Source: Zygnema circumcarinatum SAG 698-1b (Eukaryota; Plantae; Zygnematophyceae). From it: 64,000 nucleotides of DNA. Shown here in pieces: positions 13,905-48,698 of the stretch (its first letter is position 1; every line of letters begins with the position of its first letter). The position numbers and the translations under genes were made by a program. A model generated the notes under the pieces. It saw only the letters and a list, made by a program, of their open reading frames with translations. It was not told where the DNA came from and did no database searches. The stretch covers positions 1,950,525 through 2,014,524 of the forward strand of contig CM074816.1 of the NCBI GenBank assembly GCA_037447605.1. Reading direction: 5' to 3'.

Positions 13905-16900
13905 TCACTCGTCAACAGGCTTGGGAGCTACGGGGGGCACAATAAGAAATGGCCGCATCATCTCAAAGTCCTCATGTTCGGCGATGTGGCAGTGCCACAC
14001 ATATCCCGGCTCCGCGGAAGGGTCGAATGGGAAGGGCTGACCGTTCTGCACATGAAGCCGAGAGGACCGAGTCAACAGAATTCCCCAAGAAAAGCGTTGC
14101 TGGATAACAATGAAATGATAAGTTCACTGAAAATTTTGAGTTCCTTTTCAGTAACTTCAACAAATAAGGATGCCCGGAGGAGCTCACCTGACTGGTCAAT
14201 TTGAACATGATCTGGGCGACATCGTTCACTTCAGCTGCAAAAGTGTCCTTCCAGCCGAGCTCGGCGATGTGGGGCCCACGCTTTTCACCCGTATAGCAGC
14301 TCGGCTTCGACGAGTCTGTGAACGAGCAGGTGCCGTTCTGGTACATGCCGATGTCGTACTGCTGGCGGCTGATGACACGGAATTTGACGGCGTGCAGGTG
14401 AATCGTGTGAATCTGTGGCGTCTCGTTGATCAAATACCACACCTCACTGGATTCCTGCATCGAGTCAAGATCACGAACATCTTAAGAGGCAGAACAAAAA
14501 CTGTTCACAAATTGCAGCCACATACAATGAAGCTGATTGACTCCGTGGAGAGGTGTAGACTTAAGCAAGCCATGAGGTCCAGACTATACCCGAGTAACGA
14601 TCTCAGTGGCAGCCTCAGCCCAGTGCCTTCCTCCAAGAAGGTGAACTCGGTCCATGAAGAGTGGCGTTTCAATGAGGGGCAACCAACGCACAATATCAGC
14701 ATTAGCAGGGTCCATTACTGGCAATTCTGCCAGAGTTTCTGGCAAGTCTTCTGAAGGAATGGGAGCCTCCGCCACTCTCAGCTTCATGACCACTCCCAAG
14801 TTGGTGTCGACTGGCAGCCCATACTCGTTCAGTTCCAACTGCCCGAAATTGACAATGTACACATCAGCAGGGCCAACACTCCCCTCCACATCAAAGTCCA
14901 CTACGACTTCAATCCTTTCTGCGGGAGCAATTCCGATGGATGAAAGTGCCACAGGGTGCTCGATGTAGCCGGCATCCGTCGCAATCTGGTAAGCCATCAA
15001 GCGTTCGCCGTTGGGCAGAGAAAAGTTGAGACCAGTCCCCGCGGATGGCACACTCTGGTTGACGTAAAGGAAGGTGAGATTCAAGCGTCGCAGCCCATCG
15101 CTGTTAAGGATTCGGAAACGGTACTTTGTCCTTTGCACGTCAAGATAAGGCCACGCCTGCGCAAATGCAGAACGAGTGTGAGAGTCATTAAGCTTCAAAG
15201 CGGTTTGACTTCACGTCAACAAAGAAAAGGATGATTTTGATCAGAGAGGTACGTACCACATTGTTAGTGGTGGTAACTTCACGGAACGAAGTAACGACGG
15301 AGTCCTCATCCTCGATGACGTGCAGCGATCCATCCTCAAGAAGCACCTTGTTCAAGATGTTGAGGGGGATGTCAAACTCTCCCTGTGGGAGTGCATAGCC
15401 TCCGTTTGGCAGCTTAAAGCGAGCCTCGTCGCCTGCCGGATCCGTGACAAAGTAGAATCCAGCCAAACCTGCACCCCTCCCTCCATGCCTCGCCCTCAGC
15501 CCATGCCCTCCTGCATACTCTGTTGCAACCATGGCCGCCATAGAACATAGAAAGGGAAGGAGGGAGGTGGGGAGTGCGCGCTGACCGAAGTAGGTGCTGA
15601 GCTGCGTGAGGCCCATGGTGTGGTCGTGCAGCCATAGGGTGGCGGGCAGCTGCGCGTTGTGGTATTTGTACAGACTCTTCACGAAGGTGCTGCCCTTCTC
15701 GCCCTTTGCTGTAAACCACGCCTCCGGATGGCCGTCGGATTCCGGCTCCGTCTCCCCTCCATGGAGATGCATCACTGCATACGACGCAACCATGATTTCG
15801 TGAGTAGGCAGGTATTACCTGTTTTCTAAGCGTATTCCACTATTTCAGCAAAGTTTAAGGTAAGCGAAGCTAATGAAGAGTGAAAAACGGACAAGGTCGA
15901 TTGTCCTAGTCTATACGAGGTGCATACGACTTGCTGTTCAAAAACATGAAGCTCGTTTGGAAAACGAATTGGTGCGTACCAACTGGAATGCCGCCATTCA
16001 CTGGCAAGACAGAGACTGGCGTGTAGACGGAGCGCACGTATGACTCGTCTGTGAGATAGTTCTCCCACTGAATGTATGTGGGAGTGCCGCGGGTTGCAAT
16101 CACTGTAGGCCCCGGAGTACTGGCCGTCGCCTCAGTTTCACCATAGCCGTAAAGGACTGTTGCCGGCAAGTCCCGATGAATTTTCTGCAGACGGAAACTT
16201 ACTGAGTGTAAGCTGACGACGAAATGATGTGCAGACCGAACTAAACGGCAGGAGGCACCGATCCCGCATGCATGCACTCAATTACCATGTCTCGCCTCCT
16301 TACAGCTTCATGTAAATTCATGCAAACTTTGGCTCAATTGGCAGCTTGGAGTGAGCGTGTACCCCTACCTCATACACTTTGTAGAATCCCAACGTTATGG
16401 GCTCTCCAGTGGAGCCATCGATGGTAGCCGGAATGAACAAGGGCGTCACGAACTTGCAGAGGTCGGGGAAGACGCTGACGCAGCTGTCGTCAGAGGCGAC
16501 CTCGTCTCCAGCGACATAGCCAGCTGCTGATGCCGAGCCTGCCAGGCAGGAAGGCGGCTCGTGTCAGGTGGACGGACATGTAAGGGGCATTTTCAGTCAG
16601 TCGGCCATGGCTTCAGGGAAGCTTCAGCTTCAAGCAGAGTGAAAGGAGCAGAGGAAAGGGCAGGAGAGCGTACTCGCAATGACGGTTGGCTCATCCATGG
16701 CGACCAGACGGTGGCGGGTGCTTGTGCCTCTGTTTGACAAGGCTGCGAACATCTTCGCGTCCTCGCTCCTTCTTCCGGGATCCCTCGCGGCCACCACCCC
16801 CACGCTGAAGAGCGCAACCAATACGAAGGCGGCGCATGTAACCTGCGGAGAGAGGGTGCGAGCGGTGAGGGAGGGAAGGAAGTAGACGAAGACATGTGCG

Positions 16901-17002
16901 CACCCGCACGCTCACAACGCTTGCGCTTCCTGCAATCGATGCTTCGAGCTCACAGCATTTGAGAAAGGGAGAAGGCAGATGGAAGGCTTCTCTGACCTTC
17001 AT
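13905..17002 (-). CDS. Secreted three-domain multicopper oxidase, CotA/bilirubin oxidase/LPR-like (MCO-a), multi-exon
   Basis: A 6-nt coding first exon (ATGAAG) gives the signal peptide MK|VTCAAFVLVALFSVGVVAA. Family motifs are IHRDLPAT, MHLHGG, WLHDH, AWPYLDVQRTKYRFRILN, HTIHLH, GWKDT and YVWHCHIAEHEDFEMMRP. All copper ligands are present. The stop is TGA at 13905-13907. Confidence 0.92.
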
Positions 17003-48100: not shown

Positions 48101-48698
48101 TCGGCCCAACGCATGCATCGGAGCTCATGTTCACGTCAGGCGTCACACGTAACATCTTCCCTCCGTCAGGCACATGCAACTTCACGCCGGTATGCCAACT
48201 TGACACCGTCTCTTCATTGGAGATGTGCATTTGCTTAAAAAAAAAAAAAAAGCCATCAGGTGTTCTGGTTCTCTGCAGAAATGGCACTATGGCGGAATAA
48301 TCTGCAAAAACGATCGACCATACTCGCTGATCTAATGATTGGTTATTGGCTCCTCTCCACGTATGCTGTAAACAAAGCTGTGCGCTTGCTTGCCGACTTC
48401 CGCACTGTCAGTCCCCTTTTCGCACTGCCATGACCTTTCATTATGATTTGCTTATCTGCAGGACGAGGTCAATCTGACCAAGGTTGTCACCCACGCTTGG
48501 GCGTCCATGGCTGCCGGTGGCAACCCTGAGTGGCGTGACGGCACGCGTTGGCTTCCGTGGGACCCCGAGGCAGAGGCAGGCGCGTTCTTGGACTATCCGA
48601 TTAGCACCCTAAAATCCCTCTCCTTCAGAGACCGCTGTAGTCGACTGCAGGATGCAAATACTCAGAGTATCGCCGCCATGGCCACGGCCTCGTCTTAG
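45129..48698 (+). CDS. Type-B carboxylesterase, CE3, multi-exon (start 45129, or 45276 for a simple signal peptide)
   Basis: [16 protein letters not shown]|[15 protein letters not shown] and [22 protein letters not shown] are present. The elbow is GNSAG, the acid is Asp in ASADG and the His is in GPTHASEL. The stop is TAG at 48696-48698. Confidence 0.92.

Follow-up and report, generated by a model that had tools for sequence, protein, structure and literature searches.

Positions 13905–48698 of a 64,000-nucleotide window from the zygnematophyte Zygnema circumcarinatum SAG 698-1b (assembly GCA_037447605.1, contig CM074816.1, positions 1,950,525 to 2,014,524, forward strand) are filled by seven intact, intron-rich enzyme genes from four families. 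These 34.8 kb hold three type-B carboxylesterases (CE1, CE2 and CE3), two three-domain multicopper oxidases (MCO-a and MCO-b), one GH1 β-glucosidase (GH1) and one α/β hydrolase (ABH). An earlier interpretation, made from the letters of the window without database searches (the sequence-only reading), had named the same seven genes and proposed that they act together on phenolics. The observation is confirmed, with intact gene models at the same coordinates and matches in Pfam and the Protein Data Bank (PDB); the interpretation as a whole is partly supported. We describe the array as a set of old, locally duplicated enzymes of the secretory pathway, whose core would be a type-B carboxylesterase beside a CotA/LPR1-type oxidase that lost, or never had, the iron-binding triad. 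That esterase and oxidase form a co-regulated unit in the secretory pathway is our tentative proposal, with somewhat less than an even chance of being right.

In favor of such a unit, two unrelated families are interleaved, with three esterases and two oxidases in 35 kb. Moreover, one esterase–oxidase pair, CE2/MCO-b, is arranged head to head across a short spacer, is spliced, and is found in the same RNA assemblies. Across the array, no catalytic residue or copper ligand is missing, and in all seven models the frame is open from ATG to stop. The outer coordinates, 13905 and 48698, are the final stop-codon bases of MCO-a and CE3, respectively.

The interleaved esterases and oxidases

On the minus strand, MCO-a follows CE1 in tandem; CE2 and MCO-b are divergent, with their ATGs 849 bp apart; and on the plus strand, CE3 follows MCO-b in tandem. 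Our gene models and the sequence-only reading agree on this arrangement. That adjacency survived these differing orientations suggests that local rearrangements did not scatter the pairs. Pairwise identity is 47.5–52% among the three esterases and 46% between the oxidases. With paralogues only 46–52% identical, the array would be ancient. The esterases have eight intron positions, all common to CE1, CE2 and CE3. The equal age of the two families and their interleaved order would fit duplication of an esterase–oxidase unit followed by one further esterase duplication. Because the orientations differ among the pairs, later local inversions would also be required. In the oxidase tree described below, MCO-a and MCO-b group separately with other algal sequences; judged from these sequences, the a/b duplication is older than the divergence from several of those algae. 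Given a split that old, the two copies have long remained within 26 kb of sequence.

That each oxidase adjoins an esterase had been offered as recurrent evidence. The adjacency is seen, but the common introns and similar identities indicate that one event was counted repeatedly: all three adjacencies may stem from a single ancestral esterase–oxidase neighborhood.

The CE2/MCO-b pair was also followed in RNA. Four assemblies (X9, X20, X22 and X25) were compared over positions 36800–42800, covering CE2 and MCO-b only, with repeats masked at 37251–37302, 38975–39027 and 39325–39436. X25 and X9 are unlabelled runs and were taken as RNA because their contigs carry GT..AG joints. Introns 1–3 of CE2 were confirmed exactly by spliced contigs (X9, X25 and X20), and at the end of exon 4 there is a loose contig end, at 36848, with letters matching exon 5. 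Six introns of MCO-b (introns 2–7) were likewise confirmed exactly as GT..AG joints, and spliced MCO-b reads occur in at least three studies. The two genes had comparable contig depth in X25 and X9 and were weak in X20; neither was detected in X22. X9 had been located through MCO-b alone, and its CE2 signal is thus an independent observation.

The spacer between the two start codons (38504–39352, 849 bp, no strand) is a candidate bidirectional promoter; repeat masking affected a part of it (39212–39412). One X25 contig spans CE2 exon 1, this spacer and MCO-b exons 1–3 (region 38104–40857). The predicted intron 1 of MCO-b (39498–39818), which joins the signal-peptide exon to exon 2, was not seen spliced in these assemblies, and contigs that splice later introns run through it. 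The unspliced intron and the bridging contig may reflect transcripts that overlap head to head, retention of the intron, or another start for MCO-b. The bridging contig is consistent with a bidirectional promoter whose transcripts overlap in this way, in contigs that carry no strand and with n = 4. Support for the functional link drawn earlier through all seven genes is confined to the CE2/MCO-b pair; GH1 and ABH are tied to the other five genes by position only.

For the proposed unit, we picture the following. Esterase and oxidase would be co-regulated, at least CE2 and MCO-b through their common bidirectional promoter, and both enzymes would meet in one compartment of the secretory route, be it wall, mucilage or vacuole. 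There, ester cleavage by the esterase may release a phenolic acid or alcohol, to be oxidized or coupled by the laccase-like oxidase. GH1 may act on the same material as a glucose conjugate, its tie being one of position. ABH has no signal peptide and is probably uninvolved.

The oxidases and their algal clade

MCO-a (17002..13905, minus strand; 9 exons, 641 aa) and MCO-b (39353..42895, plus strand; 8 exons, 636 aa) both carry four copper motifs (HxHG, HxH, HxxHxH and HCHxxxHxxxxM). These read MHLHGG, WLHDH, HTIHLH and HCHIAEHEDFEMM in MCO-a, and MHLHGG, WYHDH, HTIHIH and HCHMTEHEDYEMM in MCO-b. Exons 1 and 2 of MCO-a (17002–16997 and 16842–16674) were placed from splice sites only, as was exon 1 of MCO-b. 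Pfam Cu-oxidase_2 scored above its cut-off on the last two MCO-a exons, and the top PDB matches of the oxidase exons in phmmer searches were CotA, the copper oxidase 7z5p and bilirubin oxidase. By sequence, both proteins are members of the CotA/LPR1 branch, not plant laccases, ascorbate oxidases or Fet3.

Against 1.8 billion representatives, a profile of the domain-2 exon built from both paralogues matched no more than four proteins below 1e-30. When P0058, the closest full-length relative, was used as the query, the matches were algal transcriptome proteins, then LPR1-like proteins from Closterium, a liverwort and a fern, and then bacterial proteins labelled 'spore coat protein A'.

We then compared the oxidases with LPR1 at its Fe2+-binding acidic triad, using the motifs WxPE.., N.A..P.P.G[DE] and N.T.[DE].HP as defined in PMC9168544. 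In the alignment of MCO-a and MCO-b, motifs 1 and 2 are unrecognizable, and the acid of motif 3 is Gln. The transcriptome proteins P0058, P0205 and P0206 and the fragments P0055 and P0056 likewise have no triad motifs, and carry HTIHLH in place of HPIHLH. The motifs are kept in the aligned sequences from Closterium, the liverwort Calypogeia, P0057, a fern and many bacteria. In a maximum-likelihood tree, the triad-less algal sequences, namely MCO-a, MCO-b and five others, form one clade (Shimodaira–Hasegawa-like approximate likelihood-ratio test, SH-aLRT, 100). The partners of MCO-a in this clade are the three transcriptome proteins (support 99), and those of MCO-b are P0055 and P0056 from run SRR9302961 (support 97), fragments that fill only one third of the columns.

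MCO-a and MCO-b resemble Arabidopsis LPR1 and Bacillus CotA (PMC9168544) in their three cupredoxin domains, four copper motifs and axial Met. They differ from LPR1 in having no Fe2+ triad motifs, in HTIHLH (HTIHIH in MCO-b) for HPIHLH, and in forming, with their algal relatives, a fully supported clade of their own. The missing triad motifs and the closeness to the CotA structure suggest that the substrates are organic compounds and not Fe2+. With copper ligands kept and the iron-binding motifs of LPR1 absent, 'laccase-like', the label used in the sequence-only reading, is a fair description. PMC9168544 lists triad-less relatives for bacteria and haloarchaea only, and a triad-less eukaryotic (zygnematophyte-like) clade, as delimited by our alignment, seems undescribed in that paper.

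An alternative is that these oxidases are LPR1-like cell-wall ferroxidases, with neighbors that are incidental or serve nutrient scavenging, so that the locus would belong to iron and phosphate biology. Their place on the CotA/LPR1 branch and the existence of true LPR1-type genes in zygnematophytes (PMC9168544) favor this view. However, the three triad motifs are absent or replaced in MCO-a and MCO-b and kept in the other lineages just named, and we regard the idea as highly unlikely.

Duplication of this oxidase family was also seen outside Zygnema. In Closterium sp. NIES-65 (L006, 10001–16891), two true LPR1-type oxidase genes stand in tandem, 1.7 kb apart, with no esterases near. The family has thus been duplicated locally in another zygnematophyte too.

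Esterases, GH1, ABH and the surrounding sequence

Gene models were built from stop-free segments in all frames, motif scans, alignment of the paralogues and GT/GC-AG splice sites; bacterial-style open reading frame lists of the window consist mostly of spurious GC-rich frames. Pfam scans were run on single exons. The esterase models are CE1 (22689..18972, minus strand; 9 exons, 579 aa), CE2 (38503..34103, minus strand; 9 exons, 596 aa) and CE3 (45276..48698, plus strand; 9 exons, 590 aa). CE1 and CE2 have exons that pass the cut-off of Pfam COesterase (PF00135); single exons of CE1 and CE3 match this profile below the cut-off (21.0 bits for the CE3 exon versus a curated 27). In a feature search, 99 of the 100 clusters returned were COesterase. 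The nearest PDB entries to the esterase exons in phmmer searches were cholinesterase, sterol esterase and bile-salt lipase. A word-indexed protein search with a long open reading frame holding a single short esterase exon gave no match; exon-sized queries cannot reach full-length relatives there. To our knowledge, type-B carboxylesterases are close to absent from land plants.

Catalytic residues were read from the models. The nucleophile elbows are GHSQG in CE1, GHSAG in CE2 and GNSAG in CE3, the acid residues are Glu, Glu and Asp (SADG), respectively, and each protein has a downstream His. In CE1, the modelled triad consists of the Ser of GHSQG, the Glu of STNEG and the His of GAYHSVDL. An HGG oxyanion motif is present in the esterase models. 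The Ser of CE2 (LNGHSAG) aligns with that of cholinesterase (LFGESAG), one solved esterase also has GHSAG, and the His of CE2 in GPGHAVDL aligns with the catalytic His region of bile-salt lipase (GADHADDL). Outside the array, the motif GESAG at 9954–9968 (minus strand) was considered as a mark of a fourth esterase and rejected as a chance match; no esterase exons lie near it.

All introns of CE3 are GT-AG, at the same positions as in CE1 and CE2. Introns 4 and 8 of CE1 need GC donors (20968 and 19335) to keep the frame, whereas CE2 and CE3 have GT there; intron 1 of GH1 has a GC donor as well (25115). GC-AG introns may be frequent here in general; otherwise, CE1 may be drifting. Intron 7 of CE2 (34980–35846, 867 nt) consists mainly of low-complexity repeats, C/T-rich on the minus strand. 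These read as long proline/serine/leucine open reading frames in several frames and are the source of a GC-skew peak of +0.35 at 34–36 kb.

GH1 (24956..29290, plus strand; 13 exons, 504 aa) matches Pfam Glyco_hydro_1 on three exons and has both catalytic Glu residues in frame, the acid/base in TLNEP at 26834 and the nucleophile in ITENG at 28483. ABH (32067..31153, minus strand; 1 exon, 304 aa) is intronless, has the elbow GHSMG, and matches Pfam Abhydrolase_1, Hydrolase_4 and Abhydrolase_6 (E = 9e-20). Its best relatives are algal transcriptome and Logan proteins, with 49% and 41% identity over 86–87% of the query. Against bacterial proteins, identity is at most ∼43% over ∼40% of the query, or ∼30–34% over two thirds. 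On these comparisons, ABH does not look like a recent transfer from bacteria.

Signal-peptide-like N-termini (a basic start, a hydrophobic core of at least 10 residues, then small residues) were found by inspection and hydropathy in six of the seven proteins, including GH1 and excluding ABH, in agreement with the six signal peptides claimed before. Intergenic spacers within the array measure 0.85–2.4 kb. When the window was searched by relaxed tblastn with each of the seven proteins, no extra copy or relic appeared, and there are no other genes between the seven. As had been described, housekeeping genes flank the array, with a helicase/BMT5-like gene at one end and genes for an M1 aminopeptidase and a cyclin at the opposite end. 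The window is intron-rich eukaryotic DNA, with a G+C content of 0.52–0.64 in the array region versus 0.46–0.50 in the flanks. G+C at third codon positions is 0.65–0.75 in all seven genes versus 0.45–0.71 in coding segments of the three flanking genes (helicase, aminopeptidase and cyclin), which suggests that the array has a common composition, distinct from that of most neighbors. In the region of the helicase gene, a stop-free segment at 9017–9412 (minus strand) matches Pfam ABC_tran (E = 9.5e-10), beside helicase-like sequence.

Competing explanations and related systems

Several observations weigh against a co-regulated esterase–oxidase unit. If the three adjacencies come from one block, they are not independent, and the one ancestral adjacency may be due to chance; nor does a simple block duplication give the observed orientations. 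Evidence of expression covers two genes in four assemblies, as assembler word depth in runs picked for holding the region. The closest oxidase relatives are transcripts or lie on contigs of at most 3.4 kb, with no neighbors visible: P0057 is a 2.2-kb RNA contig, and P0055 and P0056 lie on contigs of 2.4 and 3.4 kb. No non-trivial 8–10-mer is common to at least five of the six upstream regions; those common to four are at the upper edge of what shuffled sequences give. The window also contains no scaffold-forming 'signature' enzyme, such as one from the shikimate or gallate branch.

Alternatively, the array may simply have persisted, an explanation to which we also give a substantial probability, if short of even. 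Here, an esterase and an oxidase became neighbors by chance, local duplications and small inversions followed, GH1 and ABH are unrelated to them, and the members share no pathway and are secreted merely because such families usually are. The common intron positions and similar divergence allow the repeated adjacency to be one inherited event, no upstream motif is shared, and animals often carry type-B esterases in tandem arrays (PMC2266714, PMC8061265). Loci elsewhere agree. Three Closterium LPR1-type loci (L004–L006) have no esterase, GH1 or ABH in their 10-kb flanks. A metagenome scan with the oxidase profile gave bacterial CotA-type loci only, 80 in number (28–43% identity; 24 of them at least 10 kb), with no algal orthologue among them; at none of these loci was an esterase, GH1 or ABH relative seen within 10 kb. 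This argument is weak, however: L004–L006 are true LPR1-type paralogues, and neither they nor the bacterial loci are orthologous to this oxidase clade. Against mere persistence, both genes of the pair remained intact neighbors in each product of an ancient duplication, despite changes of orientation, and CE2 and MCO-b are detected together across a head-to-head spacer of 849 bp. The same bacterial loci bear on the idea that the array is an operon remnant, oxidase and adjoining esterase having been transferred together. Streptophyte LPR1-type oxidases are thought to come from soil bacteria (PMC9168544), yet none of the 80 loci holds such relatives, the esterases have eight conserved introns, and their nearest solved relatives are eukaryotic (cholinesterases, a fungal sterol esterase and bile-salt lipase). 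We consider this origin barely credible.

The pathway put forward in the sequence-only reading would use all seven genes on galloyl-glucose or purpurogallin-type phenolics, with GH1 removing glucose, the esterases cleaving galloyl esters and the oxidases coupling phenols. Four unrelated enzyme families in a row, with six signal peptides, invite such a proposal. Among zygnematophyte pigments there are indeed purpurogallin glucosides, as well as glucose polymers that bear ester-linked gallate in complex with Fe(III) (PMC12257149, PMC11156808, bioRxiv 10.1101/2023.10.20.563300), and PMC6273956 describes laccases turning pyrogallol and gallate into purpurogallin-type products in vitro. The late steps of zygnematophyte phenolic pigments are unknown (PMC11156808, PMC12257149), and secreted proteins with multicopper oxidase domains are strongly UV-induced in Serritaenia, another zygnematophyte (PMC11156808); a text search of that study's supplement gave no mention of the enzyme families of the array. 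These papers make the proposed substrate conceivable. However, GH1 and ABH belong by position only, ABH is without a signal peptide, and no scaffold-forming enzyme lies in the window. For pigment, the Ancylonema genome preprint names only the DHQD/SD expansion and no oxidase, esterase or glucosidase (10.1101/2023.10.20.563300). The galloyl-glucose or purpurogallin substrate is an inference, as the sequence-only reading itself said, and a seven-gene phenolic pathway, unsupported beyond position, strikes us as improbable. A narrower version is doubtful, if not to the same degree: a co-regulated streptophyte-alga cluster in which the triad-less laccase clade, the type-B carboxylesterases and GH1 process ester- or glucose-linked phenolics, such as gallate-type sunscreens or those of mucilage and wall.

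Known systems offer partial likenesses. During lignification in Arabidopsis, secreted GH1 enzymes (BGLU45/46) free a phenolic aglycone from monolignol glucosides, which secreted multicopper oxidases (LAC4/17) oxidize. The array matches this GH1-then-oxidase logic, whereas the lignification genes are unclustered, their laccases belong to the plant LAC family, and no esterase takes part. In the Aspergillus fumigatus dihydroxynaphthalene (DHN)-melanin cluster, a serine hydrolase (ayg1) and copper oxidases (abr1/abr2) act sequentially on a phenolic intermediate to yield pigment. There too, a serine hydrolase and two multicopper oxidases stand side by side, a likeness of description; unlike the array, the melanin cluster is built round a polyketide synthase, and its hydrolase is not a type-B carboxylesterase.

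As in plant metabolic gene clusters (PMC8418127), at least three non-homologous enzyme genes stand side by side between unrelated genes, and tailoring-type enzymes occur with local duplicates. Unlike those clusters, the array has no scaffold-forming signature enzyme or known product, and its evidence of co-expression is crude and limited to two genes. All members are hydrolases or oxidases, mostly secretory, and the array looks more like processing or catabolism than biosynthesis. Animal carboxylesterase arrays (PMC2266714, PMC8061265) likewise consist of type-B genes multiplied in place by local duplication, but they hold a single family, whereas in Zygnema a second, unrelated family is interleaved.

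If the link between esterases and oxidases proves spurious, what remains is an ordinary array of genes duplicated locally long ago. The oxidases nonetheless extend the LPR1/CotA story, in that some zygnematophytes have a second, duplicated lineage without the iron site beside the true ferroxidase lineage. Should the esterase–oxidase unit prove functional, it would provide concrete candidates for enzymes of phenolic sunscreens and of wall or mucilage phenolics in the algae closest to land plants, and would bear on whether this lineage already had physical clusters of non-homologous enzyme genes. Were the cluster indeed one for phenolics, it would supply missing late enzymes of pigment formation and an early instance, close to the rise of land plants, of clustered metabolic genes.

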